From positions 62,001 to 126,000 of the IMG/VR virus record IMGVR_UViG_3300020195_000009: 64,000 nt of DNA. One strand, written 5' to 3'. How positions within the stretch are numbered: position 1 is the stretch's first letter; the number at the start of each line of letters is the position of its first letter. This document shows, in pieces, positions 3,226-56,743 of this stretch. Both the position numbers and the translations under genes were made by a program. The notes beneath the pieces were generated by a model. That model searched no databases. It saw only the letters and a program-made list of their open reading frames with translations, and had not been told where the DNA came from.

Positions 3226-3261
3226 GGGTAGGGACCTAGGGACCTACCATGAACCCTGGTA

Positions 3262-35949: not shown

Positions 35950-38900
35950 CTAGATTCTAGCTCTGAGGTTGAATGTGAGCACAAGGTAGAGGAGCGGGAA
36001 GATCGGCTGGTAGAAGGCCTCTGCCCTCAAGATGGTCGGGTCCTCCGTGTCGACCTGAGCCGAGATGCCCGTGAAGGCCGCCACGATCTCCTGCTGGATG
36101 AGCTGCTTGAAGAGTGAGGTCATCGAGACCTCGACTTCATTGACTCGGGAGGACAGGATCTTGGTGCCGACGAAGGCATCGAGAACCGCCCTGGAGTTGA
36201 TCGACACGAAGTCGGCGATCTGGGTGACCGTCGGAAGCCTCGTGAGCACCGACGTCATGTTCGTGGTGAGACCCTGGCGAACCCGAACGATCGGGTCGAG
36301 GTCTTCCAGGAGAGTCACACCAGCCGTTGCCGTCTGGTTCAGCTCCACCGCATCGAGGATACGTGGGATTCGGGTGAACCCCTGAACCCTTCGACGGGTG
36401 TAAGGAGTCGCCACGTCAATCGCAGGGCTGCATACGGCACCTGCAACGGCCGCCGCGAAGAACGATCCGTCCACCAAGGTCTCGAAGGTCTCCCCCAGCT
36501 CGTTGGAGAGGGTGATGACCGAAGAGTCCGGGTAGAAGGCAACCATTCGCTGGCTGACAAGACCCCGAGCGACCGTTTGGGCCGTCGTGGGAGTCGTCCC
36601 ACTTGCGAACCCGATGAATCCCATCCGTTCCGACTGGTTGCGGATGTTGCTCTGGATCTCGCAGTGTTGGGTGAGGAACGAGTAGACCGCCGTGTCCGTG
36701 GCGAGCGGGATGATGACGTCTGGCTTGATGTTGCCAGGTAGCGGGGTCCCTAGCGCTTGGATCGCGTCGATGAACGACTGAGCCGAGGCTTGATTCGTAT
36801 TCGGAACCTTGAGGACCTGCTTGACTCCAACGAGGACGGCCCCATTGAGAATTGTCAGGAAGGCTCCGAGCGTGACCCGATTCTCAGCCGAGAGTGTCCC
36901 GAAGTTGGCCTGGATCGTCTTGAACTGACGGAAGATCCGGGTGGAAAAGTCCTGCTTCAAGAAGCGGTACGAGATGAAGTAGAAGTCCCCGTTCTTGGGC
37001 TCCACTCCACTCGGGTTGAACGTCTGAAGCGTTGCCGTATCGTTGATCCCGACATTCACCGTGTTGGTAACGATGGTCTCCAACCCAGGAATCGAGAGGT
37101 ACGGTACGGACGGGTTGACGTTCCACGTTGGAGAGACATCCATCGTGAAGAAGCCGCCCGTGTTGTACGATCCATCTGCGCTCGGAAGAACCGTGAACCG
37201 AAGGCCAGACCTGACGTCCGTGTACGTCTGACCAGGGATACCCGTACCCGCCGACCCGATGGGGTTGTTCGAGGTGACGACAAAGTTGTCGTAGACGCCT
37301 TCTCCACTGTCCCCATCCGTACCTGGAACAATCTGCGTTCCAGTCAGGACGTTGAAAGCCGAGTTGGTTCCCGTCACGAAGGCGATTGCAGACGTTGTAC
37401 CCAGCACGACGGACTCGATGGTGAGGTACGTCTGAGCGTCGATGACCGATGGGTAGGTCACGGCACCCGTCGCACTGGGCGTCGGAGGGGACCAGGTGGA
37501 AACCGCAAAGCCTATGGTATCCATGAGGCGATCGACAACCTCTTGGACTGACACTCGGGTCTGGCTTGCGAAGTCGCCTTCGTTGAAGCCGAAAATCGCA
37601 TTGGCCGAGCCGTTGAGGATGAGGACAGCGCTCTGGTCGCTGTTGGTGTTCGAGGTGATGCGAATCTTGTTGAGGTTTGCACCCGTTCCAACGCTGGCCG
37701 TTCCTTGAGAGGAGATGGCCGCGTTGATATCGATCACAACCAGAGCTGCCGTTGTCGACGCTGGGTTGACGATGGCAGTGAAGTCGATCCCGTTGACCCG
37801 GACCTTGAACTCATCACTCACCCCACTCACGACAGAGAAGGGTTGAGCGAGAGTACCGAGAATCGTAGCCGCCTTGTTGACGGCTCCGGTTGTACCGTCT
37901 GCCCGCTGGAAGGTCGTGAACCCCAGCGTCGTCTCCGCAGTACCCTGACGGATAGCGGAGTAAGACGTGTGGTCGAACCCTGCCGGAAGGGCGGTTGGGA
38001 CTGCGTAGCTCCGAAGCACGAAGAACGTGCTGGAAGCACCCGGCCCAGGGATCGGCGTGAACATGTTGTTCGGGGCCGTCCCAAGGAACGTGGCGTTCGC
38101 ATCGATGACTGCATTGACTGCGGTTGCAATCGCAGCCGGAGTGATCGCCGGACCTGCTGGAAGCGTGACGGTGAGATCGACACCGTCGATGGTGATCTCC
38201 AACAAGTCGTTGACGGCTGCTGTGATGAGAACGCCACCACCGCTGAGGGGGACAGCTTGGCTGACGAGATAGCCGCGAGTAGCGACATTCAAGTTGGTAG
38301 CGAGCGTTGATCCGCCGTTGAGAACCGTTCGCCAGGTTGCCGACGAAGGACCATAGAAGGAGAACGGTTGGGCTCCCTTGTTCGTGTACACGGCATTCGT
38401 AGCCGCACTCACTCCGAAGGTGACCGTGACGGTCTCAGAAACCGGCGTACCCCCAAAGTGGAAGACATCCGGGATCTGCTCCACCCCACGAGGCCACTGG
38501 ACCGTGTCCACAAGGCCGCCGCCCTTCGACCCGAACCGGACTTGAAGAACGTTCGAGTTGAAGAGGGAACTGAAAACCTCGAACTGACCCGTTCCGATGG
38601 GACCGGGAGTCTTGTTGGTGAGGATGTACGTGTCGTCCGCGATGCGGTTGTAATAGAAGGTGGCGAACGCCTTATAGTCAGGCGGGACCGCATCCTTCAA
38701 GGTGATCTTGCGGGATACCCCATCGACAGCCAAGACCTTGGCGACTGGACGATTGAGGGCGTCCCGGAGGTTTCGACCCACACGGACCACAACGAGGTCC
38801 GGGCGGTTGGAGATGAGGTCTTGGCGCTGGTTGGTAGCCGCAAAGAACAGATCCAACCCAAGGACCGTGTCACGACCGTTGCCGGTCGTCGGGTTCGTGG

Positions 38901-40248
38901 GGAGGAGGAACTCCGTCGTGGAGGTCCTAGCTGGGACAACCGAGTTGTCGATGAACCGAGCACACTCCGCAAGCCAGAGCTTGTCGTCCACCAAGGTGGG
39001 ACCGATCTGACTGTCATCAAACAGCTCAGCGCCAGGGGTGCGCAACGTCGAAGAGACGGCGTAGCTGGTACCCCAATGGATGATCGACACGTCCGGGGAC
39101 GGGTTCGACACCACGAAGTCCTGGTTTTGAATGAAGTCTGCACGACCGGGAGAGATGCCGGCCCGGATCACGTTGGTGACCAGAGTGTTGGGGAGGTAGT
39201 CGAACGTATCCTGCCAGGTGTTGGCGAAGTACGTGATGAGGACTTCCGAGCCAGGAGCAGGAGCCGTGGGCAACGTAACCGTGCCGTTCGTCCCATCGAC
39301 GGAAGCCGGAATCACCTGGACTCCGTTGACCTTGGCGACAACCTTGCTCGGGTCCGTCGTTGTAAGGCCAGCGCTGGTCCCATCTACAATGGGGCGCTGG
39401 AAGACCTTGTAGGTAGCGTTACGGGCCGTCTTTTGACCGTTGACCAGACCAAGGATACCGTTCGCGTTGCCATCCCCAATTTCAATTGAGGTAGCCGCGT
39501 TGAACTGAAGATGCAGAGTGCCGTCGTTGGCCGTGAAGACACTCGTAGTGAGACCGACGATCGCGGCTGCATCGATCTGGGTCTTGAGGGACGATGCGGT
39601 TGCCGCAGGGGCAACCGTGAACGTAACCGATACCTCGGCTCCCCCGTTCACCTTGATCCTGAAGTTGTCGTTCGCCCCAGCGGTGATGTTGAACGTCTGG
39701 TAGCCGGGAGTGACGATTTCTGCCGTCGTCGTCGTCACCTGGTCGGACAAGTCGTCCGTGAAGGCCGTGTCGCCCCGGTGGAAGAAGTAGGTGCAACGAA
39801 CGACGTCCGTTGGTTGCGGAGGGACTTGGAGGATGACTTCTCCGGTTGAGCCTCGGACGGCTCCAACCGCCACCGGGATCCCGTTGACCGTCACGGTCAC
39901 GGATCGGACGTCGTTGGTCGTTCGACCGAATCCTTGCCCATCTACGATGGGGAAATTCCGAATCTTGAACCGCGTCCGAGTCCCATCATTCACCCCAAGA
40001 ATGGGGTTGGCCGGGTTGGAGTCATCGACAATCCAACGGACCGTGATGTCCTCGTTGACGATCTGCTGGTCAAGAGTCGATGACGAACCTCTCACCATCT
40101 CCAGGTCGAGCTGCTCCAGCTCTTCCTGACCCACACCAATGACGGTGGGGATGCGAAGGCCTGCGATGAGCGCAGCCACATTCGCTTCCGTCAAAGTACG
40201 AGAGTAAACGCCAGGAGGAACGTACGTAGTGAAGGGGCCCAACGCCAT
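35950..40248 (-). CDS. Contractile tail sheath protein with large insertion domains
   Basis: N-terminal 'YVPPGVYSRT'; C-terminal 'VRVRQGLTT...RLPTVTQIADFV...AFVGTK...YQPIFPLLYLVLTF' are sheath signatures. Confidence 0.92.
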   Translation of the reverse strand: MALGPFTTYVPPGVYSRTLTEANVAALIAGLRIPTVIGVGQEELEQLDLEMVRGSSSTLDQQIVNEDITVRWIVDDSNPANPILGVNDGTRTRFKIRNFPIVDGQGFGRTTNDVRSVTVTVNGIPVAVGAVRGSTGEVILQVPPQPTDVVRCTYFFHRGDTAFTDDLSDQVTTTTAEIVTPGYQTFNITAGANDNFRIKVNGGAEVSVTFTVAPAATASSLKTQIDAAAIVGLTTSVFTANDGTLHLQFNAATSIEIGDGNANGILGLVNGQKTARNATYKVFQRPIVDGTSAGLTTTDPSKVVAKVNGVQVIPASVDGTNGTVTLPTAPAPGSEVLITYFANTWQDTFDYLPNTLVTNVIRAGISPGRADFIQNQDFVVSNPSPDVSIIHWGTSYAVSSTLRTPGAELFDDSQIGPTLVDDKLWLAECARFIDNSVVPARTSTTEFLLPTNPTTGNGRDTVLGLDLFFAATNQRQDLISNRPDLVVVRVGRNLRDALNRPVAKVLAVDGVSRKITLKDAVPPDYKAFATFYYNRIADDTYILTNKTPGPIGTGQFEVFSSLFNSNVLQVRFGSKGGGLVDTVQWPRGVEQIPDVFHFGGTPVSETVTVTFGVSAATNAVYTNKGAQPFSFYGPSSATWRTVLNGGSTLATNLNVATRGYLVSQAVPLSGGGVLITAAVNDLLEITIDGVDLTVTLPAGPAITPAAIATAVNAVIDANATFLGTAPNNMFTPIPGPGASSTFFVLRSYAVPTALPAGFDHTSYSAIRQGTAETTLGFTTFQRADGTTGAVNKAATILGTLAQPFSVVSGVSDEFKVRVNGIDFTAIVNPASTTAALVVIDINAAISSQGTASVGTGANLNKIRITSNTNSDQSAVLILNGSANAIFGFNEGDFASQTRVSVQEVVDRLMDTIGFAVSTWSPPTPSATGAVTYPSVIDAQTYLTIESVVLGTTSAIAFVTGTNSAFNVLTGTQIVPGTDGDSGEGVYDNFVVTSNNPIGSAGTGIPGQTYTDVRSGLRFTVLPSADGSYNTGGFFTMDVSPTWNVNPSVPYLSIPGLETIVTNTVNVGINDTATLQTFNPSGVEPKNGDFYFISYRFLKQDFSTRIFRQFKTIQANFGTLSAENRVTLGAFLTILNGAVLVGVKQVLKVPNTNQASAQSFIDAIQALGTPLPGNIKPDVIIPLATDTAVYSFLTQHCEIQSNIRNQSERMGFIGFASGTTPTTAQTVARGLVSQRMVAFYPDSSVITLSNELGETFETLVDGSFFAAAVAGAVCSPAIDVATPYTRRRVQGFTRIPRILDAVELNQTATAGVTLLEDLDPIVRVRQGLTTNMTSVLTRLPTVTQIADFVSINSRAVLDAFVGTKILSSRVNEVEVSMTSLFKQLIQQEIVAAFTGISAQVDTEDPTILRAEAFYQPIFPLLYLVLTFNLRARI

Positions 40249-40422
40249 CTGAATTTCTCCTCAGTGTCAGGGATCGCTCAATTGGATTCGATCTTCATTT
40301 TCGATAGAAAGATGAGCGTTCTGGATCTGATTCGATTGGATCTTCATCTTCCGGTAGAACCGGGTGGCGTTTCTTCGTCAAGGTTACAATACAAGGGGAT
40401 TACCGAAGACTGAAATTTACCC

Positions 40423-40857
40423 TCAGGGCTTGGGTACGATGGGTTGGTTCTCCATCGTAACGGCGTAATCGACGAGATTTTCGCGAGCTGTCTTACCCCC
40501 AGGGCTCATCGCATCGTACTCAACAAAGCCATCCCCGTCGGAGCGGAGTAGGGCGCCGGACCCACCTTGCTCTCGGACTTGCTTCTTGACCTTCTCTCGC
40601 TCTCGGTACTCCGACCAACGTTCTTCCGCACTACGACCCACGATCTTGTCCGCCGTAGGGTAGTCATGGTCGTGGACGCCTGAGTTCGCTGCCGCTCCGT
40701 TCCCAGCCGAGAAGGCATGGGAGAAACCGTTACCCATAAAAAGGCGAGGAGCCTCCTCTTTACAGGCAGGACATGGATGTGTGGGGTGATCCCCCATTTT
40801 CAACGTTCGCTCAAACCTGGTCGAGCAACTCTGGCAATCAAAGTCGTACTTCGGCAC
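40423..40857 (-). CDS. FmdB-family zinc-ribbon protein
   Basis: 'MPKYDFDCQSCSTRFE...PCPAC' matches the CxxC-CxxC FmdB pattern; GTG start with GGAGG RBS. Confidence 0.85.
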   Translation of the reverse strand: MPKYDFDCQSCSTRFERTLKMGDHPTHPCPACKEEAPRLFMGNGFSHAFSAGNGAAANSGVHDHDYPTADKIVGRSAEERWSEYREREKVKKQVREQGGSGALLRSDGDGFVEYDAMSPGGKTARENLVDYAVTMENQPIVPKP

Positions 40858-40880
40858 GTCAGGCCTCCATCTATCTTCAT

Positions 40881-42077
40881 TTATGCGATTCGTTCGTAGA
40901 AGTTATTGCGTCCCACGATGACAGGCACCGTGGCAAAGAAGAGCCCAGCAGGAGAGGGCTCATCCAGTCTTGTGGGTCTCCCACGCCGATCTGTGGTCAC
41001 GGCAGCTTCGGCGGCTTTTGTCGCAGTCACCGCCTTGCTGATTGTGAATGGGAGAGGGATGTGAATCTCCCAGTCCGCTTGAAGCTGCAACGACAAGGAG
41101 GCGTTGTAGAAGTAGAGGTCTCCCGTCTCATCGTAGGTCTCCTCTGCCTCGCCACCCATTGACACATCGATGATCTCGATTCCCTCAAAGGAGAGGGACG
41201 CTCGTTTCTCCCCCCAAAGGGACATGACGAGAAAGTCCGCAATCTCCTCCATTTGGATGGGGTCTTGAGAGATGACATCAAGGTCAAACGAGGCTTCAAA
41301 CCGCCCACCAAAGGCGTTGGCCGCATCCACCCGATCGTCGTAAACAACGATCGCCATCTTGTCCCCGGGCTTGCCTCGTTTACCGAAGGCCATGACCACC
41401 CCTGGAAGGGTGGTCCAGTCCGCAGTGTTCCAGCGCCACTCAATAGGACCGATAGAAGGGGCCGCGTAACGATAATCTGCGGTCAAGATAGAGTTGGGTT
41501 GCAACCTGGTCTTGATCTTGATGGCCCCAGTCGCGTAGTTGACCTCAAAGTCCCTACCTTCAATGAGAAGAATTTGACGGTCTTCCCAAATGCGAACCGT
41601 TCCCGCAACGGGTTTTTGCGAAAACTGGGCCTCGGTTTCGATACCCGACCGAACCTTGAGTAGAGGCTCATCCGTCGCTGTCAAAAGAGGGTCGATGACG
41701 AACGTTCCCAGCGTCCCTTCCATGGTGGGGGCCGTCAAGCATTCGATGTAGTAGACCCCAGAGGCCGTTGGCATCCGGTCATCGTTTTTCCGAACGCAGG
41801 GGAGGTCTTCCTTGGCCCATTCGAGAAGGTAGGCCGGGGAGTCCAGGTACGCGAGCATCACGTGACTTGCGACCACACCCACAAAGTTCTCACTGGATAG
41901 CTGGACCTTGTTGGCGCTGGATCCCTTGACGACGATTCCGAACTGGGGACGCTCATCAAAGGCATATTTATTCTGAATCCACGGTACGATCTTCTGGTAA
42001 ACGGGGTGACGGGAGAAGCTGTCTTGTAGCTCAAGGATGAGACGCCTCTTGAGGCTACTAATCAAATAGTAGTACAT
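40881..42077 (-). CDS. Putative tail terminator/tail completion protein
   Basis: Located just before the sheath; 'FEASFDLDVISQDPIQMEEIADFL...YFYNASLSLQLQADW' fits the terminator fold pattern. Confidence 0.6.
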   Translation of the reverse strand: MYYYLISSLKRRLILELQDSFSRHPVYQKIVPWIQNKYAFDERPQFGIVVKGSSANKVQLSSENFVGVVASHVMLAYLDSPAYLLEWAKEDLPCVRKNDDRMPTASGVYYIECLTAPTMEGTLGTFVIDPLLTATDEPLLKVRSGIETEAQFSQKPVAGTVRIWEDRQILLIEGRDFEVNYATGAIKIKTRLQPNSILTADYRYAAPSIGPIEWRWNTADWTTLPGVVMAFGKRGKPGDKMAIVVYDDRVDAANAFGGRFEASFDLDVISQDPIQMEEIADFLVMSLWGEKRASLSFEGIEIIDVSMGGEAEETYDETGDLYFYNASLSLQLQADWEIHIPLPFTISKAVTATKAAEAAVTTDRRGRPTRLDEPSPAGLFFATVPVIVGRNNFYERIA

Positions 42078-42196
42078 CAGGCCGCTCCCGACAGTAACTG
42101 GGGCAGGGCCGGCTGCTTTTGACGAGCCTTAGCGCACGGGCTGCAATGCCCGGACTTGTCCCGTTCCATCGATCCACACTTCCTACAGGGCCGCAT
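42077..42196 (-). CDS. 39-aa CxxC...CxxC zinc-finger mini-protein (probable homing-endonuclease N-terminal remnant)
   Basis: Not in the ORF track: MRPCRKCGSMERDKSGHCSPCAKARQKQPALPQLLSGAA*; its TGA overlaps the next ATG (TGATG). Confidence 0.65.
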   Translation of the reverse strand: MRPCRKCGSMERDKSGHCSPCAKARQKQPALPQLLSGAA

Positions 42197-42205
42197 TGTA
42201 GCCTA

Positions 42206-43246
42206 TCACCCGTCGTGTTCCTGCGTAGCGAGCACGAGGAGACCTTCGGCAACCGCCGTCATCGGGTCTTTCGCCTGACGAATCTCAGAGATTTCGATAG
42301 GGAAACCCTTCTTCTTGATGGCCATGAACTCCTCTTTGAATAGGTCCATGAACCCTTCGGCTAGAGAGGTCCCACCGCTGACCACGAAGGGGACGGCATC
42401 AGGGAGGGTGACCTTCCCCTGCTCCCGCCTGAACTGAATCGCGATCTTCTCCAGGCAATAGGAGATGAGGCTTCGGATGTAGAGAGCGATGGCTTCCGCG
42501 TCCCGGTTACCCTTTCCAGGGTTGGCGAGGTTGAAGCCGCCCTTCTCCTTGGTCGAGCACATCCGAGTCGCCGTTGAACCGACGGCCTTGGCGGCATGAA
42601 GGTCGATCCAATCACCCCCACGAGCGATGGAGAAGTCCATCCCCATCATCGTCTGGTAGGAAAGGGCAACGTTGCACATGCCCGAGCCGAACGAGACAGC
42701 CAGCCCGGAAAACTGCTCTTCCGCACATTGGCTGTAGATGATGGCCATCGCCTCGTTCATCGGGTGCGGGGTATATCGATGCTCCGTGATGATCTGCTTG
42801 AAGACCTCACGGTGATAGGCCACGTCCTGATCGGGGACGTCGATGGGTTCGGCCGGCACGCTGTAGTAGCAGTGCTCGCCAACCTCAAGGGCTTCTCCAA
42901 GAACTTGGAGAACCATCATCGAGAGGATCTCTTGCGACTCCAGCTCACCGGGGGCGATGAGGCCCTTTGCTAAGGGCCGGCGAACTTCCCTCTTGAAGAG
43001 GTTCGCCATGTTGAGGGCACTGTCCCCGATGACGATGAGCTGTCCGTCCTTCTCGACGTAATTCACCTTGGACATCTTGAGCGCCTTCTTGGCGTCGATC
43101 TCAAGGTCGATGAAAGCGTCTCGGACCCTCTTCGTTTTCACGTCCGTCCCGTACTGCCGGGCGGACACGAGGTTCATGGTGCCTACGTCTAGCCCGACCC
43201 CCAGCACAGCATTCGATTCATTTGCCATATTCATATCCTTTTTCAT
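42206..43246 (-). CDS. Actin-fold ATPase (MreB/ParM/FtsA superfamily)
   Basis: Phosphate-1 'GLDVGTMN', connect-1 'MNEAMA', phosphate-2 'VSFGSGMCN', 'GGDWID', adenosine 'VVSGGTS', connect-2 'DPMTAVAEG'. Start may be the ATG at 43228. Confidence 0.9.
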   Translation of the reverse strand: MKKDMNMANESNAVLGVGLDVGTMNLVSARQYGTDVKTKRVRDAFIDLEIDAKKALKMSKVNYVEKDGQLIVIGDSALNMANLFKREVRRPLAKGLIAPGELESQEILSMMVLQVLGEALEVGEHCYYSVPAEPIDVPDQDVAYHREVFKQIITEHRYTPHPMNEAMAIIYSQCAEEQFSGLAVSFGSGMCNVALSYQTMMGMDFSIARGGDWIDLHAAKAVGSTATRMCSTKEKGGFNLANPGKGNRDAEAIALYIRSLISYCLEKIAIQFRREQGKVTLPDAVPFVVSGGTSLAEGFMDLFKEEFMAIKKKGFPIEISEIRQAKDPMTAVAEGLLVLATQEHDG

Positions 43247-43273
43247 CTGGTTTTAGCGGGGTGAACCCGAAAG

Positions 43274-43978
43274 CTAACGACGTTTCCAGAGATCAGCCGC
43301 CGTCTTAGGTGCCGGCTTCCCTCTTTGGAGGAGCAAGTAAACGTGCTCCTCGTGCTTGTCCTCAATCCCAGCAAGGAGGTTATCTGTACCACGTGAGAGC
43401 CGGTCGACTTGCTCCAAAGAGGCAACCATCTGCTTCACGCAGTCCAAGAACCATCGTTCCGCTTTAAGAGAGGTCGCGATGAACGAGTCGGGGTTCTCAC
43501 CTTCCCCGAAGGTCTCCCCGTCCCCACAGAGGGCCTCCACTACCAGAGCCACTTGCTTGGCTTGGGCACCTGGATGGATCATAGACAGCGGGCTGCCTTG
43601 ACCTACCGCCCGCTCCGCAACTTGGTCGATCTCTCCAACTACATCGTTGTAGAGGCGATCAAAGAGCAAGTGGTCCGCGTAGAAAACACCACCATACGTG
43701 AGCCAGTGGTGGCTTTGGTGGACCATTGCAAGCGACCGAAGGAGCGTCAGGATGGCGGGAAGAACCGCCTCGGGGGCTGCAATTGTGGCCTCAAGGACCC
43801 CCGCTACCACTTCTCGAACCGAAGCTACTCGACCCTTAAGCTCAGGGAGGTAGGGCGGTCCTTGCGTGTACGGGTCGTAAGATGAGGGATCCTGCCAAAT
43901 CGAATGGGAGGCATCCTCGGAAGGTGTTACGGGAGCAAATGGGTAAGCCCCAACCTTTTTCCACGCAAGAGGGTTCAC
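43274..43978 (-). CDS. Dps/ferritin-like protein with N-terminal extension
   Basis: 'HQSHHWLTYGGVFYADHLLFDRLY....EIDQVAER' matches the Dps signature H-W...G..F...H..F...Y......D..AER. Confidence 0.85.
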   Translation of the reverse strand: MNPLAWKKVGAYPFAPVTPSEDASHSIWQDPSSYDPYTQGPPYLPELKGRVASVREVVAGVLEATIAAPEAVLPAILTLLRSLAMVHQSHHWLTYGGVFYADHLLFDRLYNDVVGEIDQVAERAVGQGSPLSMIHPGAQAKQVALVVEALCGDGETFGEGENPDSFIATSLKAERWFLDCVKQMVASLEQVDRLSRGTDNLLAGIEDKHEEHVYLLLQRGKPAPKTAADLWKRR

Positions 43979-44709
43979 TTGAACCTCTGCTCCATCTGCT
44001 TGGCGACGAGCGCTGCCTTTTCGGCGAGAGTCTTGATCTCAGGCATCACAAGAGCGAGCACCAAGGTGGGGTCTTCGGTTCGCCCCACGCCAACCTTTTT
44101 CAGGCGAGCAGACCTCTGAGCCGCCTCTTTGAGGCCTTTGACGACCTCTCCGAACTGATCCGTCAAAACCTTGAGGGCTGGGTGGCTCTCCCCTTGGTCA
44201 AGGATCTCCGCAGCCATTTCCCACTGCTCTTCGGAGCCTGAGACAATCGCTACTTTCCCCCCTTTAGGGGGTAGCCTTGACGGGGTGGCTTCCTTGTTCT
44301 TCAGTTCCTTACCAACATCATTCAGAGTCGATTTATCGGCCTTGGGGGTGAAGCTCTTGCCGGAATAGGGACTCTTGAGCGTCCCCGTCATCTTCTTCGG
44401 GAGGAAGAACTCCTTGCCGTCCCCATCGACATACTTGAAGAGAGCGCCTTTGACTTTGGCACCCTCTTCCTTCAGTTCCTTGCCAACATCACCCATCGAT
44501 GAGCGTTCTGGCTTCCCCGTGAAGCTCTTGCCGGAATAGGGACTCTTGAGCGGACCTATTTTCTTCTCCGGTAGGTAGAAATCCCCACCCTCTTCATCCG
44601 TGTACTTCCAAAGCACGGCGGCCGAAGTCTTCTCGATGAGATTGGCGGTACGATCGAGAAGGGCCTGCTTGGGATCGGTTGTGAGCATGGATCGTCTCCG
44701 TAAACCCAC
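43975..44709 (-). CDS. Hypothetical protein with a duplicated 57-aa domain
   Basis: Two copies of '(W/F)KY.D..G..F.LP.K..G.LKSPYSGKSFT.K...S...DVGKELK'; probable start is the ATG at 44688. Confidence 0.75.
   Translation of the reverse strand: MGLRRRSMLTTDPKQALLDRTANLIEKTSAAVLWKYTDEEGGDFYLPEKKIGPLKSPYSGKSFTGKPERSSMGDVGKELKEEGAKVKGALFKYVDGDGKEFFLPKKMTGTLKSPYSGKSFTPKADKSTLNDVGKELKNKEATPSRLPPKGGKVAIVSGSEEQWEMAAEILDQGESHPALKVLTDQFGEVVKGLKEAAQRSARLKKVGVGRTEDPTLVLALVMPEIKTLAEKAALVAKQMEQRFK
44348..44552. repeat. 34-bp identical direct repeat, 171-bp period
   Basis: gtgaagctcttgccggaatagggactcttgagcg at 44348-44381 and 44519-44552. Confidence 0.9.
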
Positions 44710-44742
44710 CCCGCATAAGAACTTTCAGACGTACTGAGCCTT

Positions 44743-45411
44743 TCATTGACCGCCCTGCTGAGACTTCAACCGACGAAGAGCATTCTTCGCCTGTGAGACC
44801 CCACCGGCTTCCGCAGTGGTCTCCTGAACCGCGATTCGAGAAGCATCAACCCCGTCCGGCTTGATTTGAGAGGGTATGAAGTTGGGAGCAGCCTCTTCTT
44901 GGAACTCAGGCAAACTAGCCCTGGAGCCTTGAACGACGGTCTGCATCACGGTCGGTCGGTCCTTCAGGAGAGTGAGCATCTGGTTCAACTTCTCGTCGGT
45001 CGAATTGGCAGCTTGAGCTTCTTGCTCCAAGCGGACCTTTTCTGCTTTCACGGCCGCCAGCTCGGTTTGTAGTCTTACGTTCTCTTCTTGAAGCTTAGCC
45101 TGGTCTCCCTTGAGAACCTGGTTCTCATCCGTGAGCCCGTTGGTCCGGCTTTGAAGGGCGTGGGCCAAGTCATTGGCGAACCGCTCCTCTTCCACTGCTG
45201 GGGCTCGGGGGGATTTCTTGTTGAAGAGTAGGCTGTTGATGTTGAGCTGAAAGATGATCCCTTGGGAAAGGGCTCGATGGAGGTCGATCGACCGGACGAC
45301 AAGGTCAGCCGGGACTGTAACCGCATGACCCTTGGGGACCGAGAAAGCGATGTCCTCGATGATAAAATCCGAAGTCACCCCGCAAACGACCATATCACCC
45401 GTGTTCGTCAT
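44743..45411 (-). CDS. Coiled-coil protein
   Basis: 222 aa; central heptad region 'LTDENQVLKGDQAKLQEENVRLQTELAAVKAEKVRLEQE'. Confidence 0.7.
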   Translation of the reverse strand: MTNTGDMVVCGVTSDFIIEDIAFSVPKGHAVTVPADLVVRSIDLHRALSQGIIFQLNINSLLFNKKSPRAPAVEEERFANDLAHALQSRTNGLTDENQVLKGDQAKLQEENVRLQTELAAVKAEKVRLEQEAQAANSTDEKLNQMLTLLKDRPTVMQTVVQGSRASLPEFQEEAAPNFIPSQIKPDGVDASRIAVQETTAEAGGVSQAKNALRRLKSQQGGQ

Positions 45412-45899
45412 CTGGATGCACCTCTGGCCGCTCGTGAGGCAGCCGCTTGAATCTCCTTGACTACACGCTGACGAATCAACTCTTTAGCTTCAACCTTGGC
45501 CTTCTCAACGAAATCAAACGGCCCTCGGCCTGGGTGGATCCACTTCCCATCCTTCATGGACCGGGCCGAAGCAGTACGAAAGATCAACTCCCCCGTTTCC
45601 GTGATGATCGGGATCGGACGTCTGGCTTTCACAAGCCACGTCATCTGACCCTTCTTTTGGCCCCGGAGCATCATGGCGAAGGCTGGGTGGTTCGACATGA
45701 TTGTCAAGGACGAGGGGCCAACTTGAACGGAAATGGCCTTAGAAAAGGACTTCTTAGCTCGATCAGAGAAGGTCGACTGGAGGAGCTTCTTGCGGACCCG
45801 ATACAGGATCTCCCCCTTCATCAACTGAAGGGCTCGACTAGGGGAATCGGAGATCCCCTTAATTAAAGGCTTGCCGTAGATCGAGGAGATGCGATCCAT
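45408..45899 (-). CDS. Putative neck/tail-completion protein
   Basis: Basic 163-aa protein with 'WIHPG..P..F', a motif common in phage head-tail completion proteins; adjacent to a neck gene. Confidence 0.55.
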   Translation of the reverse strand: MDRISSIYGKPLIKGISDSPSRALQLMKGEILYRVRKKLLQSTFSDRAKKSFSKAISVQVGPSSLTIMSNHPAFAMMLRGQKKGQMTWLVKARRPIPIITETGELIFRTASARSMKDGKWIHPGRGPFDFVEKAKVEAKELIRQRVVKEIQAAASRAARGASR

Positions 45900-45908
45900 T
45901 AGGAGACC

Positions 45909-47324
45909 CTACACGAACCGAGAAACGGCATGGGCAACCTCCAACAAGGAATACCCCACCAAAAATAGAATGCCGTAGTTAGTGTTCTCCCAAGCTTTAG
46001 TTCGGCCGCGAAGCTCACGCTCATTCCCGATGCCGGGCTTCTCCGTGATGTCCCGACCAGCCTCCAACTCAGGCCCCGTGGGGCCGAACTGGGTAGCAGC
46101 AAACTTGATAGGATCTCCGGCTAGAACCTTGTACCGGATGTCCTTGTCGTCAAAGCTGCCGATGGAAAAGTGCTGCTGGAGAAGGTTGCCTCTGTTTGAG
46201 GGCATTCGGACCGGACCGATCGAGTAGCGGTCCCCATTGATCTTCAGGATGAAGTCTCGCTGGGACAGGAGCGGAGTCGGACCCGTCCAAACCTCATACG
46301 TGTGGACCGTGGTTCGCCCATGTTCCGTTTGTCGGATCGCCGTCTCGGCGTCATCAGGAGCAACGATGATCTCGTAGGGTCCTTCGTAACCCCCGACGAT
46401 CATCGTACCGAAACAAGACAAGCAATCCGCCTGAGCTTGCTTGTGATGGAACGATACACAAGGGCACGGAATGCCGACGTTCTTCCGAAGAAAGACGCTG
46501 ACTCGTTCGCCGCCTTGTTGGAGAATCCAACGGTTCCTACGGATGGCCTCCCGCCAGATGTAGTCGAGCTTCTCCGTCTCGAACGTGTTGGTAGCCGCTG
46601 CATGCTCCAGGGGGGTTTCAACGAGGTCCTGGGGGGTCACTAGCGAAAGGTTGCACCCTGTCGGTACCCCAACCGTGGTTACACGGTAGAAGATGCGTTG
46701 GTTCAAGTCCGTTTTGAGGAAGGACCGTGGGTACCGATAGGTGCAGGTCACTCGACTTTGCTGGGTTGGGACGATTGGAGGAATCGTCTGCTGGCGGCCA
46801 ACATCCGTGTAGGTATTAGAGTCTATTTCGATCTCACCCGTGTTGCCGGAGACCTTGAGGACCCGAACCTGAACCCCATCCACGTAGACCCACACATCAC
46901 GAGTGTTGTTCGTTGGGATGTTTCGAGACCCTTCGGCAACAAGGGGTGTGTGAAGAGTCCTGAAGACGTACCGAGGAGCATCCATCCCACTTGCAGAGCA
47001 ATCACCAAAGAGGGTGAACTTGTCCGAGACGTCCTCTTCTACGATCAGCTCGTTGTCCGTCTGGTCTCTCCAGAACGTAGAGCCAATAGGTAGGTCCGTG
47101 ATTCGCTCGTAAGGTCCGAACTCGGAGTCAAACGAGCGGTACACGTTGACCCCAAGCAAGTGGAACCTACTGTTCAACGTGAGGATCGCGGGATCATCCC
47201 ATCGAAGGTCGATGACCCCTCGTGTCCCATCGAGCATGAACAGGTTGAGCGGGGGAGCCGGCCACGGAAGCTTCGTCAGCTCCAGTAGTTGTGGCGTCCT
47301 ATCTCGCTGCCCAACATCAGCCAC
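45909..47324 (-). CDS. Neck/head-closure protein with zinc motif
   Basis: 'GGERVSVFLRK..G.PCPC......QADCLSCFGT..VGGY' is the large-myovirus neck pattern; FN3-like N-terminus; GTG start. Confidence 0.7.
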   Translation of the reverse strand: MADVGQRDRTPQLLELTKLPWPAPPLNLFMLDGTRGVIDLRWDDPAILTLNSRFHLLGVNVYRSFDSEFGPYERITDLPIGSTFWRDQTDNELIVEEDVSDKFTLFGDCSASGMDAPRYVFRTLHTPLVAEGSRNIPTNNTRDVWVYVDGVQVRVLKVSGNTGEIEIDSNTYTDVGRQQTIPPIVPTQQSRVTCTYRYPRSFLKTDLNQRIFYRVTTVGVPTGCNLSLVTPQDLVETPLEHAAATNTFETEKLDYIWREAIRRNRWILQQGGERVSVFLRKNVGIPCPCVSFHHKQAQADCLSCFGTMIVGGYEGPYEIIVAPDDAETAIRQTEHGRTTVHTYEVWTGPTPLLSQRDFILKINGDRYSIGPVRMPSNRGNLLQQHFSIGSFDDKDIRYKVLAGDPIKFAATQFGPTGPELEAGRDITEKPGIGNERELRGRTKAWENTNYGILFLVGYSLLEVAHAVSRFV

Positions 47325-47408
47325 GACCGCACCCCCTCCCTTGAAGATAACGGTCGAGAGCCAGGTCCGCCATGGTGCCTCACCAGAGGCACCTGATAGA
47401 GGGATCCG

Positions 47409-47774
47409 TCAGGAGGCTTTAGGGGCCCCGTTTTCCTGAGCTTGAGCTTTTTCAGCTTCCTTCTTGGCCAGCATGTCCGGAGTGACGCCATGGATGGGGT
47501 TCATCTTGCCCGTCTTGCCGTCGATTTCGACCGGGAAGTTGGGCGGGAGACCACGGGACAGAAGAAGACCCTCAAACAGCTTTTGCCGCTCTGCATCGAC
47601 GTTGGCTGCTGCCCGAAGCACGCGAACTCGCTCTTGTTCCAAGTCGAGAAGCCGCTCTGCGCACTGCATACGGGCTTGCTGGAGCTGTCCGAACTTCCCC
47701 AGTAGCTCCGGCTCAACCGGATCATCGAGGGTCAGCTTCTTGGCTTCGGGGTTGGCAGGGGTGCTCATCTTCAT
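47409..47774 (-). CDS. Hypothetical coiled-coil protein
   Basis: 121-aa ORF with its own upstream leader. Confidence 0.7.
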   Translation of the reverse strand: MKMSTPANPEAKKLTLDDPVEPELLGKFGQLQQARMQCAERLLDLEQERVRVLRAAANVDAERQKLFEGLLLSRGLPPNFPVEIDGKTGKMNPIHGVTPDMLAKKEAEKAQAQENGAPKAS

Positions 47775-47829
47775 CTTCTCCGAGTCTTGATTTATGATGG
47801 CCCTTGATGGGACGCACCGGGGGTTAGCG

Positions 47830-47840
47830 ATAAAAGGATC
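47830..47840 (-). promoter_or_regulatory. Candidate late promoter motif GATCCTTTTAT
   Basis: Same 12-mer (GGATCCTTTTAT) as at 55713-55724; intergenic, upstream of a gene start. Confidence 0.55.
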
Positions 47841-47884
47841 CTGGTTTCAACAGTCAGAGGTTTCCTGACCCTACACCGCTACCA

Positions 47885-48775
47885 TTAAACGCCCATGAAT
47901 TTTCGCGGGGACAGGACTCCCCTCCCGACATAGGGGCCGAAGGAGCTTCGGATCCCTGCTCCGTACTTAGGCTGCTGCAAACCCTTGACGAACTTAACCG
48001 TGGCCTTGGCTCGCTCAAGCTGCTTGTCGAACAGGTCGCTAGCCCCTGACTTGAGGGATTCGTACTTGCTCGACTTGTCGATCGTCAAAGAAATTCCACC
48101 GATCGAGTAGTCGAACTCATCCGCCACCCAATTGATCTGAAGGGCTTGGAGGGCGTAGATCATCGCTCCGGTGAGGAGGAGGGTCTTCCACTCTGGGCGA
48201 TACTGCGCCATTTGCTCGATGTTACCAAAGGGGGTACGAGGAGGCGTGGCGATGACCATGTCCAGGGATCGATCTAAGTACTCCAGCAACTCAACGTCTT
48301 CCCAGATGTAGCCAAAAACCCTGCTGAATTGGTTGACTGTCTCCTCGTGGGCGGGGGGCCTGAATTTGTAGAACTTGTCCGGGTTTTGGTCCCTGAGCAG
48401 CATCCGAAGACGGTTGATGAGTTCGATTTCAAGCGGGGAGTAACATACGGGCATCGCTGTCTCGCGATCACGTACGTTGAACTCCTGCACCACGGTTTGA
48501 AGAGGCCCGCCAACGATCTCACGCATAACCCAACGGATTCGGTAATCTCCGAGGTTAGCATCCAGAGGAATGATGAGGCTGGCGTAGTATTCTCCAACCG
48601 TTGGGTTCAACGGGTTCCTCTTGGGGGTACCTACGAGCACTTCGAGGCCGGTCGTGAAGTCGTAGATGGCGTAGTAAATTTCAGCCGCGTTGATAGGGTG
48701 CCCTGACGAGTTGGTCAGGAAGAGGTTGAGGTCGTCTCGGCCTAGCTGTTGTCCTCGAAGGAAGCCTACACCCAT
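47885..48775 (-). CDS. Head-tail adaptor (neck 1) with N-terminal Ig-like domain
   Basis: 'LINRLRMLLRD...YIWEDVELLEYL...FDYSIGGISLTIDKSSKY' resembles gp15/gp6-type adaptors. Confidence 0.65.
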   Translation of the reverse strand: MGVGFLRGQQLGRDDLNLFLTNSSGHPINAAEIYYAIYDFTTGLEVLVGTPKRNPLNPTVGEYYASLIIPLDANLGDYRIRWVMREIVGGPLQTVVQEFNVRDRETAMPVCYSPLEIELINRLRMLLRDQNPDKFYKFRPPAHEETVNQFSRVFGYIWEDVELLEYLDRSLDMVIATPPRTPFGNIEQMAQYRPEWKTLLLTGAMIYALQALQINWVADEFDYSIGGISLTIDKSSKYESLKSGASDLFDKQLERAKATVKFVKGLQQPKYGAGIRSSFGPYVGRGVLSPRKFMGV

Positions 48776-48776
48776 G

Positions 48777-49265
48777 TCACCACCCGTACTTTCCGCAACC
48801 GGATGGGGTCAAGCACTTCCATTGGCAACTACCCACGGGGTTCAAGTTGGTGCAGCCACAACCCCCAGAGGAGCAACCACAACCAAGTCTCTGGTATGTG
48901 ACACCAGGGAGGTATTGAGCCGTATCGAAGACCTTGAACCCGAAGCGGTCGGAAGCGAACGGAGAGCCGAATGACTCCTGAAACTTCCACTCTACGAACC
49001 AATCCCCTGGTTGACCGCACTGACCAGCAACCCCCGAGACGTAGTACTCCCCGATGTCAGCGTTCACGGGGGTCCGGTCACAAGGGCCAACCCGCATCGG
49101 TGCGCAAGCCCCCTTGGAGTAACGGAAGAGCGTGAATGTGACCTTAAAGGGGCTGACGGGGTTACCTGCTGTGTCCGTGATGAAGATGGGGAGGTCCCCT
49201 CTTTGGAATACATACCCCCACTTGAAGATCCCAGGGCTGACGGATCTAGCAATCATTCTTCTCAC
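48777..49265 (-). CDS. Ig-like protein paralogous to the neck-1 N-terminus, Cys-rich tail
   Basis: 'DLPIFITDTAGNPV...VG...RTPVNADIGEYY' aligns with 'DLNLFLTNSSGHPI...VG...RNPLNPTVGEYY'. Confidence 0.7.
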   Translation of the reverse strand: MRRMIARSVSPGIFKWGYVFQRGDLPIFITDTAGNPVSPFKVTFTLFRYSKGACAPMRVGPCDRTPVNADIGEYYVSGVAGQCGQPGDWFVEWKFQESFGSPFASDRFGFKVFDTAQYLPGVTYQRLGCGCSSGGCGCTNLNPVGSCQWKCLTPSGCGKYGW

Positions 49266-49656
49266 CCGGCCCGATAAAAGAAGCCTTCATCCCGCTTCCA
49301 AGGGCCACCCCACCCGAAACAACGTCGTAATCCTGAGCTAGGATCTGAGATCCAACAGGGTAAGTGACGAGAAGACGCCAGTAACCCACGGCGTTGGGGC
49401 GCCAACGAACGCTGTAGGGGCCGTTTGGACCGGGAATCTCGTGCCAGTAGACCTTCCCAGAGACGACCTGCGGGTCCAAGATCCCAACACCAGATACGAG
49501 CGCCCAAGTGAGCAGAGAGTTGTTGAAGAAGACCTGAAACACGACCTGACTGATCGTCAACCCGGCCTGTCGAGTGAACCCGTCAAGTTGAAAGAAGTCC
49601 GCCTGGTCGTAGACAACCTGGTTGGACTGTACCAGTCTGCCTCGGGTTGTGGCCAT
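49246..49656 (-). CDS. Putative structural protein (paralogue of 50216..50761)
   Basis: Shared 'WALVSGVGI.D.QV..GKVYW.E...Y.VR..PN.VG.WRL..TYP'. Confidence 0.75.
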   Translation of the reverse strand: MATTRGRLVQSNQVVYDQADFFQLDGFTRQAGLTISQVVFQVFFNNSLLTWALVSGVGILDPQVVSGKVYWHEIPGPNGPYSVRWRPNAVGYWRLLVTYPVGSQILAQDYDVVSGGVALGSGMKASFIGPGEKNDC

Positions 49657-51234: not shown

Positions 51235-51891
51235 TTACTTAGGTTTGAAAGGTTTTCTGGGCGGATTGAGATCAATCATCCCGTTGTTGGCTGACGGGGT
51301 CTTGTTCTTTGACTTGCCACTACCCGTCGCATCAATGAATTGTTGAAGCGTAGTTGCCCCGTTGACCGAGGGCATGGGAGACGGTGCTCCAGGGTGTGGT
51401 GTCCAGGTAATGTCCGCTTGGAAGAAGGTTCCACCGGCTTGAAGATTCGCAAGGATCAACCGGGTAACAAGAAGGTCACCGACTGTGAACCCAGACCCAG
51501 AAGCCGCCAAGGTAGCAGTCAGGAACGCAATCAACGAGGTGTTGAGGTCTGCACTTCCAACAAGGGAGGCACCCAAGGCGAAGGCGGCCTTTACATCCGA
51601 GGAGAATGAGGTGTCTCCTGCAAAGGCAGCTTGAAGAGCAAGAGTTGCAAGGAGATTTGAAGCGTAGGAAGCGTCCCCTGAGAGGGTAGAGTTCACAAGG
51701 AACGCAAGTCCTGCGTCTCCAGACTGGGAAGCACCACCAGAGATTGTAGAGCCCACAGGGAGCGCTAATCCTGCGTCTCCAGACTGGGAAGCACCACCAG
51801 AGATTGTGACACCCAACGGGTAGTTGGCCGTCGCATCTACGGTTTGCGTAGATGACCCATCCAGTGTCGCGTCTACGGCATGATCCGTCAT
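51235..51891 (-). CDS. Repeat-rich fibre-like protein (20-aa repeats)
   Basis: 'TISGGASQSGDAGLA' repeats; C-terminus shared with 51909..53102. Confidence 0.7.
   Translation of the reverse strand: MTDHAVDATLDGSSTQTVDATANYPLGVTISGGASQSGDAGLALPVGSTISGGASQSGDAGLAFLVNSTLSGDASYASNLLATLALQAAFAGDTSFSSDVKAAFALGASLVGSADLNTSLIAFLTATLAASGSGFTVGDLLVTRLILANLQAGGTFFQADITWTPHPGAPSPMPSVNGATTLQQFIDATGSGKSKNKTPSANNGMIDLNPPRKPFKPK
51709..51807. repeat. 39-bp identical direct repeat, 60-bp period
   Basis: tcctgcgtctccagactgggaagcaccaccagagattgt at 51709-51747 and 51769-51807. Confidence 0.9.
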
Positions 51892-56736: not shown

Positions 56737-56743
56737 GGTCTTT

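Follow-up and report, generated by a model that had tools for sequence, protein, structure and literature searches.

Why would a huge phage keep an actin gene among its neck and tail genes? We examined this question in a 64-kb stretch of DNA (referred to here as the window), which is part of a 286-kb IMG/VR huge-phage record. A sequence-only reading of the window had described an actin-fold ATPase with all five ASKHA motifs but with Ser in place of Asp in phosphate 2. It placed this gene between neck genes and the tail terminator and sheath, together with a co-oriented coiled-coil protein, a duplicated-domain protein and a Dps-like protein. It had proposed that these genes form an actin-based system that scaffolds or transports heads or tails, with the coiled-coil protein as candidate adaptor, possibly a functional analogue of the PhuZ spindle. 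Our analysis confirmed what was observed in the sequence. The proposed interpretation was supported only in part: the actin, its linkage and the choice of adaptor gained support, whereas no evidence shows that heads or tails are the cargo. Taken together, the results point to an undescribed phage actin cytoskeleton acting late in infection.

The volactin-family gene and its genomic context

We initially verified that all four ORFs exist at the coordinates given below, all on the minus strand. To identify the actin (42206-43246, 346 aa), we compared its translation with Pfam. It matched PF25216 Volactin at E 8e-71, with 239.5 bits against a cut-off of 35, over 319 of 321 profile positions (3 to 321). 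A search of the whole genome gave the same result, and the scan at E<=0.01 returned only Volactin, with no match to MreB_Mbl. No PDB sequence hit was found. The AF2 model had a pLDDT of 96 and a pTM of 0.93, and its best solved folds were the MamK filament (VIA Z 27.3), followed by MreB/Mbl (about 25) and F-actin (about 24.5). The protein is 39 to 40% identical to haloarchaeal volactin-family genes. In an alignment of 101 family members, the nucleotide-binding residues D20, G22, T23, E165, G187, G189, D212, D215, G291 and G292 were invariant. The phosphate-2 Ser (S185, in V-S-F-G-S-G) is real, and it was likewise invariant in all 101 phage, bacterial and archaeal sequences, whereas four of five MreB sequences have Asp there and the fifth is gapped. 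This residue is therefore a family signature and not a peculiarity of this gene.

The fold alone does not single out filament formers, as DnaK and FtsA also matched the model at Z about 23.6. We therefore considered a non-filamentous actin-fold ATPase, working as an assembly chaperone or platform for the tail or neck in the manner of Hsp70 or PilM/FtsA-type platform proteins, with the coiled-coil protein as its co-factor or client. The position of the gene directly before the tail terminator in every locus is in line with this idea. However, the founder of the sequence family polymerises (PMC10869688), the top structural matches are the filament-forming MamK, MreB and actin, and the protein has only 346 aa and no Hsp70 substrate-binding domain. 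We regard this reading as improbable.

To determine whether the gene was taken from a host MreB, we built a tree of the family. All volactin-type sequences were separated from five MreB sequences by a long branch with support 100, and the phage actins formed one clade inside the volactin family (SH-aLRT 99). Homologues nested within host MreB and lacking conserved linkage to neck genes had been named in advance as an outcome that would count against the sequence-only reading. Neither was found. Of 37 loci collected from the actin side, 35 showed the linkage to the neck and tail genes, and all 69 loci collected from the tail-terminator side had the actin directly upstream. More than 2,500 homologues were detected. 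The best 120 are 66 to 100% identical, and many lie on contigs of 200 to 570 kb. In most of the 37 loci, the actin was the most conserved gene of the block. Many homologues carry inteins, at three or more sites in the ATP-binding motifs, although the copy in the window has none. These insertions indicate that the motifs are constrained sites of a highly conserved gene, and they add a new class of intein host protein.

The flanking genes were identified mainly by homology to the cultured myovirus Tunturiibacter phage Tunturi_5, which has the same neck and tail gene order without the cassette. On the upstream side, 47885-48775 encodes a head-tail connector-like (neck) protein, homologous to gp319 (E 6e-33), for which Atlas look-alikes were Mu Gp36, T4 gp13, the SU10 adaptor and the gp6-like connector. 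The product of 45909-47324 is a homologue of gp322, the minor tail protein, and of Bacillus phage G gp175 (tblastn and BLASTP, E 2e-22 to 1e-28). A conserved 163-aa protein (45408-45899) lies at the position of gp323 and was present in 33 of 37 loci, including a distant one. Directly downstream of the actin is the tail terminator-like gene 40881-42077, a homologue of gp324 whose Atlas look-alikes were SP10_terminator and Phage_tail_terminator_9. The gap between the two genes is 128 nt here, with a median of 23 nt in relatives. It is followed by a 144-aa FmdB-type zinc-ribbon protein (40423-40857; Pfam Zn_ribbon_8, E 4e-10), found in 35 of 37 loci between the terminator and the sheath, and by a 1,432-aa tail sheath-like protein (35950-40248), which matched gp326 by BLASTP at E 1e-52 in both its N- and C-terminal parts. 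The Tunturi_5 annotations are structure-based predictions (Phold; PMC11924767), and the neck and tail labels rest on one cultured relative plus look-alike searches and not on virion proteomics. All these genes are on the minus strand, but the whole window is on one strand, so co-orientation alone is weak evidence for an operon, and no promoter or terminator signal stood out. The genes are nevertheless tightly spaced. Stop and start codons overlap by 4 nt at 45408-45411, where the stop of the 163-aa gene overlaps the start codon of the coiled-coil gene (ATGA), and at 43975-43978, and the other gaps between 45909 and 42206 are 9 to 33 nt.

Partner genes and a candidate adaptor

We next examined the three genes that precede the actin. 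The first, 44743-45411, encodes the 222-aa coiled-coil protein. Its AF2 model shows an N-terminal alpha/beta domain (residues 1 to 62), a predicted 80-residue helix (73 to 151), a disordered linker carrying the motif A-P-x-F-I-P-S-x-I-K-P (about 175 to 186) and a C-terminal helix of the type A-L-R-K-L-R-K (204 to 220). The second, 43975-44709, encodes the duplicated-domain protein and contains a 151-nt direct repeat (44286-44436 and 44457-44607, 72% identical). Alignment of its homologues suggested that the probable true start is the ATG at 44688 and not the GTG at 44709. The protein has two copies of a Cys-less zinc-ribbon-like module of about 50 aa (W-K-Y-x-D-x-x-G-x-x-F-Y-L ... K-S-P-Y-S-G-K-x-F), followed by a helical C-terminal part. 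Homologues carry one or two modules, a few keep Cys in the first knuckle, and one locus encodes the module and the Dps-like domain in a single ORF. The third gene, 43274-43978, encodes a 234-aa protein, and the earlier Dps-like assignment proved correct. A family profile hit solved Dps proteins at E 6e-11 over the whole four-helix bundle, and the protein corresponds to PHROG 3636/858. H90, H91, W92, D102, H103, D118 and E122 were invariant, with the ferroxidase-type residues H91, H103, D118 and E122 invariant in 21 homologues. A 70-aa N-terminal extension carries the conserved motif W-x-D-P-x-x-Y-D-P-x-x-x-G-P-P-Y-L-P. Dodecamer assembly, iron oxidation and DNA binding were not assayed. The Dps-like and repeat proteins often end in a shared short W-K motif that could be a targeting signal.

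To establish which partner belongs with the actin, we compared the cassette across phage clades. The Dps-like and repeat genes are absent from the most distant phage clade and are accessories of an inner clade, to which the window belongs. The coiled-coil protein is the one partner that is kept: an HMM of the inner-clade proteins found the ORF directly upstream of the actin in the distant clade at E 1e-8 to 1e-20. The gene lies upstream of the actin in 90 of 114 phage loci, directly upstream in the outer clade and with the two accessory genes between them in the inner clade. There is one such protein per locus, with the tail at the C terminus in 86 of 90.

The tail motif (P-x-F-I-P-S, then the A-L-R-K-L-R-K helix) also recurs at the end of the gene directly upstream of volactin-family genes in bacteria and haloarchaea. 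We searched 6,810 ORFs with an HMM built only from the phage tails, and all eight sub-threshold hits (E 0.011 to 0.98) were the ORF immediately upstream of a cellular volactin gene. The link to the haloarchaeal partners rests on a short helix with weak individual E-values, and genomic position, not score, carries that argument. Furthermore, the motif F-[IVL]-P-[STNPD] was present upstream of the actin in 9 of the 12 loci of the clade sister to the phages, against 0.67% of background ORFs. These results lend real support to the earlier guess that the coiled-coil protein is the adaptor.

Possible functions of the cassette

According to our preferred model, the locus encodes a phage actin cytoskeleton module whose conserved core is two genes, a volactin-family actin and a dimeric coiled-coil adaptor. 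Some of this rests directly on the analysis: the complete and strongly conserved nucleotide-binding site and the MreB/MamK/actin-like fold, membership in the family whose founder, Haloferax volactin, forms dynamically unstable, ParM-like filaments in vivo (PMC10869688), the tight and partly overlapping order of the gene pair inside the neck-to-tail block of a whole clade of huge phages, and an adaptor tail conserved from phages to the partners of bacterial and archaeal volactins while the N-terminal part differs between lineages. The remainder is our inference. The actin would polymerise with ATP, the adaptor tail would dock on the filament as the C-terminal helix of ParR docks on ParM, the coiled coil would make the adaptor bivalent, and the phage-specific N-terminal domain would bind a phage cargo. 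Polymerisation, ATP hydrolysis, adaptor-actin contact and expression timing were not measured here (no RNA run was listed), nothing identifies the cargo, and the adaptor's N-terminal domain gave no informative structural match that would suggest a ligand. Because the genes are embedded among neck and tail genes and are presumably made with them, the most likely job is to position or gather virion assembly intermediates (filled heads, tails or their junction) late in infection. That would be a functional analogue of the PhuZ spindle and of the 'bouquet' organisation of nucleus-forming jumbo phages. In the inner clade, the Dps-family protein and the small zinc-ribbon-like repeat protein were added between the two core genes and probably act as cargo, hub or regulator of the same system. 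We hold this model tentatively, as the best of several readings.

The Dps-family partner, and volactin-family members that carry an N-terminal ParB HTH, point towards DNA rather than virion parts. We therefore examined whether the cassette could be a DNA-positioning system of the ParMRC/AlpAC type without a fixed centromere. In this view, the adaptor's N-terminal domain, the Dps-family protein or both would bind phage DNA, and growing filaments would spread or centre the replicating genomes or bring DNA to procapsids. The known phage and plasmid actins ParM and AlpC move DNA through an adaptor, haloarchaeal salactin aids DNA partitioning and the dynamics of volactin resemble those of ParM (PMC10869688), and Dps proteins are DNA-binding. 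On the other hand, no centromere-like repeat array was found in 40000-49000, in agreement with the sequence-only reading, the only repeats being the intragenic 151-nt duplication and chance-level short pairs. Moreover, the distant phage clade has the actin and adaptor without the Dps-like gene, and the module is fixed in the tail/neck block and not in a replication block. No DNA-binding family matched the adaptor, and its N-terminal domain, although modelled with a pLDDT of about 93, had no informative structural neighbour, which leaves undecided whether it is a sequence-specific DNA-binding protein of the RHH or HTH type. We consider this alternative unlikely, but it is the strongest of the rivals.

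A less likely possibility is host takeover, in which the phage actin would remodel the shape, size or division of the infected cell, or anchor to the envelope, without carrying virion parts. Volactin acts in haloarchaeal cell-shape transitions, and its filaments span the cytoplasm and touch the membrane by their tips (PMC10869688). The partner proteins of Magnetococcales volactins have hydrophobic, membrane-like segments. The P-x-F-[IL] core of the tail resembles the FtsZ C-terminal peptide that binds FtsA, a resemblance that was not examined further. Conversely, the phage adaptor has no predicted membrane segment, and takeover genes are usually early and variable, whereas this pair is fixed in the late structural block and highly conserved. 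Least likely is that actin, adaptor and Dps-like protein are loaded into the particle and injected, to act at the start of the next infection, for example by organising the incoming huge genome. The genes lie in the structural block, huge phages package and eject many proteins, and the shared W-K ending could serve as a targeting signal. There is, however, no evidence of packaging, no proteome was available, and nothing like it is known for any actin.

A bolder reading, which we consider doubtful, is that the C-terminal tail (an acidic stretch, then P-x-F-I-P-S, about 20 variable residues and an A-L-R-K-L-R-K-G helix) is a universal filament-binding peptide of the volactin family. It would define a modular adaptor system shared by bacteria, haloarchaea and huge phages. 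The phage would have captured this two-gene module from a bacterium and re-aimed the adaptor's N-terminal domain at virion intermediates. That would give tailed phages an actin-driven assembly line, with a Dps dodecamer added later as a multivalent hub or DNA link.

Comparison with known systems

Phage cytoskeletons are known from a tubulin (PhuZ) in nucleus-forming jumbo phages and from a few ParM-like actins that move DNA. Here, a different actin family is a fixed, highly conserved part of the neck-tail gene block of an abundant and globally sampled clade of uncultured huge phages. No paper in the library searched mentions it, including a 2026 review of jumbo phage biology. If the filaments organise virion assembly, spatially ordered assembly in bacteria is not a speciality of the phage-nucleus lineage. 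The partner-tail motif also gives the volactin field a concrete candidate for the missing filament-binding factor, the binding factors of volactin being unknown (PMC10869688), and in Haloferax genetics and a volactin-GFP strain already exist.

MreB and MamK are the best structural matches (Z 25 to 27, about 290 aligned residues) and are similar in size, without large insertions. However, sequence identity is only 16 to 21%, Asp is replaced by Ser in phosphate 2, MreB and MamK lie across a long branch in the tree, and no MreC/MreD/RodZ or magnetosome genes are nearby. The best viral structural match was gp506 of Bacillus phage G, a distantly related huge phage (Foldseek E 1e-11). Phage G shares neck and tail homologues (gp165 and gp175) with this phage. 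The gp506 protein is 13% identical and gave no tblastn match at E<=1e-3. Its gene number places it far from gp165 and gp175, although its neighbourhood was not examined, and it is an actin-fold protein like the one studied here.

In the ParM/ParR/parC and prophage AlpC/AlpA systems (type II partition-like actins), as in this locus, an actin-fold ATPase is paired with a small adjacent adaptor gene, and the expected logic is a filament plus an adaptor that couples it to a cargo. AlpC is the precedent for a phage-borne actin. The actin subfamily is different, however, centromere repeats are absent, the adaptor is not a recognisable RHH or other DNA-binding protein, and the gene order is adaptor first and actin last, inside structural genes. 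The PhuZ/TubZ spindle is also a cytoskeletal polymer encoded by very large phages and is the proposed analogue for positioning and trafficking during assembly, but its tubulin fold is unrelated to actin. We found no tubulin (PF00091) in this record or in four related huge-phage records, two of which have terminal repeats, which is compatible with an actin system standing in for a PhuZ-type one. The presence of a phage nucleus (chimallin) was not examined. PhuZ is not encoded in the tail module, and no dedicated adaptor gene beside it is described.

Also among the closest known systems is volactin (VolA, HVO_2015) of Haloferax volcanii. It belongs to the same sequence family, has the same invariant motifs, including the phosphate-2 Ser, and is preceded by a co-directional gene that ends in a related L-[RK]-x-L-[RK]-G helix. 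Dynamic filaments have been shown only for Haloferax volactin in vivo (PMC10869688), whose known role is cell shape. The gene described here differs in that it is encoded by a phage and forms a separate clade, its partner is a 200-aa coiled-coil protein with a phage-specific N-terminal domain and not the 300-aa haloarchaeal protein, and its context is a tail/neck operon and not a cellular locus.

Genomic setting of the cassette

We initially examined the setting of the cassette. The window covers bases 62001-126000 of a 286,005-bp IMG/VR virus record that CheckV estimates to be 60% complete. All long ORFs lie on the minus strand, G+C is about 55-60% throughout, and no tRNA was found in the window. 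The locus is present in a microbial-mat metagenome, which is probably its source, and about half of its sampled 31-mers are present in a sediment metagenome. Only these two DNA metagenomes hold it, and no RNA run was listed for the locus. Three very large ORFs (5648-11866, 15612-19010, and 21993-25538; 2072, 1132, and 1181 aa) have no Pfam match and are presumably tail-fibre or baseplate giants. A 60-nt tandem repeat (51686-51807; 2 copies, 90% matches) lies inside ORF 51235-51891.

The observation made in the sequence-only reading held, as the four ORFs that it named are present. ORF 42206-43246(-), 346 aa, matches Pfam PF25216 "Volactin" at E 8e-71 (239.5 bits against a cut-off of 35) over essentially the whole model, and no other Pfam family passes E 0.01. 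PHROGs has no family for this protein, and a PDB sequence search gave no hit. To examine its fold, we built an AlphaFold2 model on 112 homologues, which has a mean pLDDT of 96 and a pTM of 0.93. Foldseek and VIA-align place the model with filament-forming actin-fold proteins, namely, the MamK filament at Z 27.3 (295 residues, rmsd 3.1, 21% identity), MreB/Mbl at about 25, and F-actin at about 24.5, followed by FtsA and DnaK at about 23.6. The nucleotide-binding and catalytic positions D20, G22, T23, E165, G187, G189, D212, D215, G291, and G292 are invariant in 101 family members from phages, bacteria, and archaea. The Ser in phosphate 2 (S185), which the sequence-only reading had pointed out, is also invariant in all 101, where MreB has Asp. 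It is therefore a hallmark of the family, which includes a protein known to polymerise.

We next analyzed the three companion genes. The 222-aa protein encoded by ORF 44743-45411 is modelled as a compact N-terminal alpha/beta domain (residues 1-62, pLDDT about 93), one 80-residue helix (residues 73-151), a disordered stretch, and a C-terminal helix (residues 204-220). Atlas and VIA structure searches with this protein returned only generic coiled coils or unnamed viral clusters, so the fold of the N-terminal domain stays unassigned. ORF 43975-44709 contains a 151-nt internal direct repeat encoding two copies of a module of about 50 aa that looks like a zinc ribbon without its cysteines. Homologues have one or two modules, a few of them keep Cys in the first knuckle, and the alignment suggests that the real start is the ATG at 44688. 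ORF 43274-43978 is a genuine Dps-family protein, since a profile of 21 homologues hits solved Dps proteins at E 6e-11 over the whole bundle. The His, His, Asp, and Glu positions of the ferroxidase site are invariant, and there is a conserved N-terminal proline-rich motif, W-x-D-P-x-x-Y-D-P-x-x-x-G-P-P-Y-L-P. In the window and in homologues from related loci (L003 to L037), the Dps-like and repeat proteins often end in a short shared C-terminal motif, (D)-P-x-W-K. In one of these loci, L037, the repeat module and the Dps-like domain lie in one ORF.

To identify the flanking genes, we searched GenBank phages with tblastn and found one cultured relative, Tunturiibacter phage Tunturi_5, a 309-kb myovirus of Acidobacteriota. 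Electron microscopy shows a contractile tail, and its annotation was made with Phold (PMC11924767). Tunturi_5 gp319 (head-tail connector) matches ORF 47885-48775, gp322 (minor tail protein) matches ORF 45909-47324, gp324 (tail terminator) matches ORF 40881-42077, and gp326 (tail sheath) matches ORF 35950-40248. The order is the same, but Tunturi_5 has nothing between gp323 and gp324, where the window has the four-gene cassette. Language-model and structure look-alikes independently point to tail-terminator families for 40881-42077 and to neck/adaptor families for 47885-48775. PHROGs gave only weak hits for the flanking genes, and neither the tail-terminator profile nor the sheath gave a usable PDB sequence hit. 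The major capsid protein and the protease homologues lie just outside the window. Bacillus phage G shares distant neck and tail homologues (gp165 and gp175) with this phage. It encodes an unrelated actin-fold protein, Gp506 (BFVD G3MAP7), which is the best viral structural match to our model at 13% identity. A 1094-aa UvrD/REP-type helicase (32198-35482; Pfam E 2e-41) is encoded directly downstream of the tail sheath gene, on the same strand and in the middle of structural genes, and a homologue lies downstream of the sheath in 15 of the 37 related loci.

Within the block the genes are tightly packed. Stop and start codons overlap by 4 nt at 45408-45411 and 43975-43978, and the other gaps from 45909 to 42206 are 9-33 nt. 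A promoter/terminator scan of 39500-49500 gave signals at or below shuffle expectation, and there is no centromere-like repeat array in 40000-49000. A pair of 22-nt direct repeats (40281-40302 and 40330-40351; 86% identical, 49 nt apart) lies in the 174-nt gap upstream of the sheath gene and may be a regulatory element.

The Volactin match at first suggested a haloarchaeal virus. This reading was rejected, as the record's relatives are bacterial-type huge phages, the nearest cultured relative infects Acidobacteriota, and a 692-aa protein in the window (19014-21092) carries an SLT lytic transglycosylase domain, which argues for a peptidoglycan-bearing bacterial host. A 357-aa protein (55795-56868) carries a lipase/esterase-type alpha/beta-hydrolase motif.

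Distribution and phylogeny of the actin

To determine how general the arrangement is, we searched for homologues of the actin. A word-indexed search found 2,581 proteins at E<=1e-5 among the 8,000 candidates scored. The best 120 are 66-100% identical, and many lie on contigs of 200-570 kb. An exhaustive search of 50% clusters found 1,043 clusters at E<=1e-3. In 37 IMG/VR loci found from the actin, the order connector, minor tail, 163-aa protein, cassette, terminator, zinc-ribbon protein, sheath is kept, and in most of these loci the actin is the most conserved gene of the block, at 55-99% identity. In some relatives (L005, L006, and other related loci), the distance from the start of the minor-tail homologue to the start of the next conserved gene is about 3 kb, against about 1.4 kb in loci L002 and L003 and 1.43 kb in the window. 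This suggests an insertion there, such as an extra gene or domain, an intein, or a homing endonuclease. Searching from the other side with a tail-terminator alignment, we found that all 69 loci with enough upstream sequence had the actin directly upstream, with a median gap of 23 nt. In addition, six MAG contigs of mixed taxonomic label carry the actin next to homologues of the same phage block, so they are almost certainly phage contigs.

About 18 of the 150 listed cluster representatives are 530-800 aa long because of inteins. Pfam finds Intein_splicing with LAGLIDADG or HNH endonuclease domains, and one is a mini-intein. The inteins, seen in homologues such as P0121, P0122, P0125, P0127, P0132, P0160, and P0223, sit at three or more sites, all within nucleotide-binding motifs: the phosphate-2 loop, just after G-M-x-N, and the G-G-D-W motif. 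The window's copy has none.

To place the phage actins, we built a tree from 101 volactin-type sequences with 5 MreB sequences as the outgroup. All phage-block-linked actins fall in one clade (SH-aLRT 99). Their sister is a bacterial and archaeal group (Magnetococcales, Desulfosarcina, Neomarinimicrobiota, a Clostridium MAG, and a Thermoplasmatales MAG), and next come Planctomycetota. The haloarchaeal volactins and two small mixed groups join at an unresolved base of the family, and MreB lies across a long branch with full support. The sequence-only reading had stated in advance that it would fall if the homologues were nested within host MreB with no conserved linkage to the neck genes. We examined both points, and neither the tree nor the linkage fulfils that condition. 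A copy of a host MreB was likewise rejected, both by the tree and by the Pfam search.

The coiled-coil protein and its C-terminal tail

We then asked which genes of the cassette form its conserved core. In the more distant phage clade (loci L038 and L040, LR745208, and others), the Dps-like and repeat genes are absent, yet a single gene of about 210 aa still sits directly upstream of the actin. An HMM built only from the inner-clade coiled-coil proteins recovers these genes at E 1e-8 to 1e-20. They share the N-terminal domain, the motif P-x-F-I-P-S, and a terminal helix of the type A-L-R-K-L-R-K. Positions P176, P180, and L212 of the 222-aa protein are invariant. There is one such protein per locus, with the tail at the C-terminus in 86 of 90, and the 286-kb record has only one such gene and only one actin. 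The conserved core is thus the actin plus the coiled-coil protein.

To examine if the tail is shared with partners of cellular volactins, we compared the genes directly upstream of cellular volactin-family genes. These differ in their N-terminal parts, with membrane-like segments in Magnetococcales, Cys-rich fingers in Desulfosarcina and Neomarinimicrobiota, and proteins of 300-550 aa in haloarchaea and Planctomycetota. Nevertheless, they end in a related tail, with the F-I-P-S motif and/or a terminal L-[RK]-x-L-[RK]-G helix, as in the bacterial and haloarchaeal loci L057 (7599-8012), L088 (7407-7805), L051 (3928-4302), L052 (6190-6738), L066 (7396-7953), L072 (6873-7829), and L075 (7047-7949). 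With an HMM of the last 60 alignment columns of the phage proteins alone, all eight sub-threshold hits among 6,810 ORFs were the ORF immediately upstream of an actin gene, in one Anaerolineae MAG and seven haloarchaeal genomes (E 0.011-0.98). Iteration then collected 41 loci, almost exclusively at that position. Moreover, the F-[IVL]-P-[STNPD] motif in the last 75 residues is present in the upstream ORF of 9 of the 12 loci of the clade sister to the phages, against 0.67% of background ORFs. The individual scores are weak, and orthologues are not independent. However, the positional specificity across several unrelated lineages is hard to explain by chance. Volactin-binding factors are stated to be unknown (PMC10869688), and these partners are candidates.

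We also tested whether N-terminally extended family members are natural adaptor-actin fusions that could stand in for a multimer prediction. The tail HMMs found nothing in them. Instead, the extensions are a second actin domain, a ParB HTH, or a Wzz/BY-kinase module. Volactin-family members (homologues P0151, P0173, P0126, and P0194, and ORF 2206-5196 of locus L132) occur as tandem actin genes or domains, as fusions to a ParB-type HTH, and as a fusion to a Wzz/GNVR/ParA-like (BY-kinase type) module, and the family seems to be used for several cellular jobs.

Possible function and known phage cytoskeletons

The analysis directly supports the family membership and fold of the actin, its intact active site, its fixed linkage to the neck/tail genes, a conserved partner with modular architecture, and the absence of a recognisable tubulin in five related records, two of which have terminal repeats. 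The steps beyond this are inferences. ATP-driven polymerisation is inferred by homology with volactin, which shows ParM-like dynamic instability (PMC10869688), and docking of the adaptor's tail on the filament is inferred by analogy with ParR and ParM. Dimerisation through the coiled coil and cargo binding by the phage-specific N-terminal domain are inferred as well. The cargo is inferred from gene position only, with virion intermediates as the leading candidate. The interpretation put forward in the sequence-only reading, that of an actin-based system that scaffolds or transports heads or tails with the coiled-coil protein as candidate adaptor, is partly supported. A DNA-linked role is the main rival, because of the Dps-family partner and because some relatives carry a ParB HTH. 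Host remodelling, a chaperone role, and virion packaging are less likely.

We found no paper describing a volactin-family actin in huge phages or an actin fixed in a tail/neck module, and a 2026 review of jumbo phages does not mention actin homologues. Phage actins (AlpC and ParM-like Alps) and phage tubulins (PhuZ) are known. Here, the phage actin belongs to the volactin family and is fixed in a tail/neck module of huge phages, and there is an additional and possibly more general finding, the adaptor tail.
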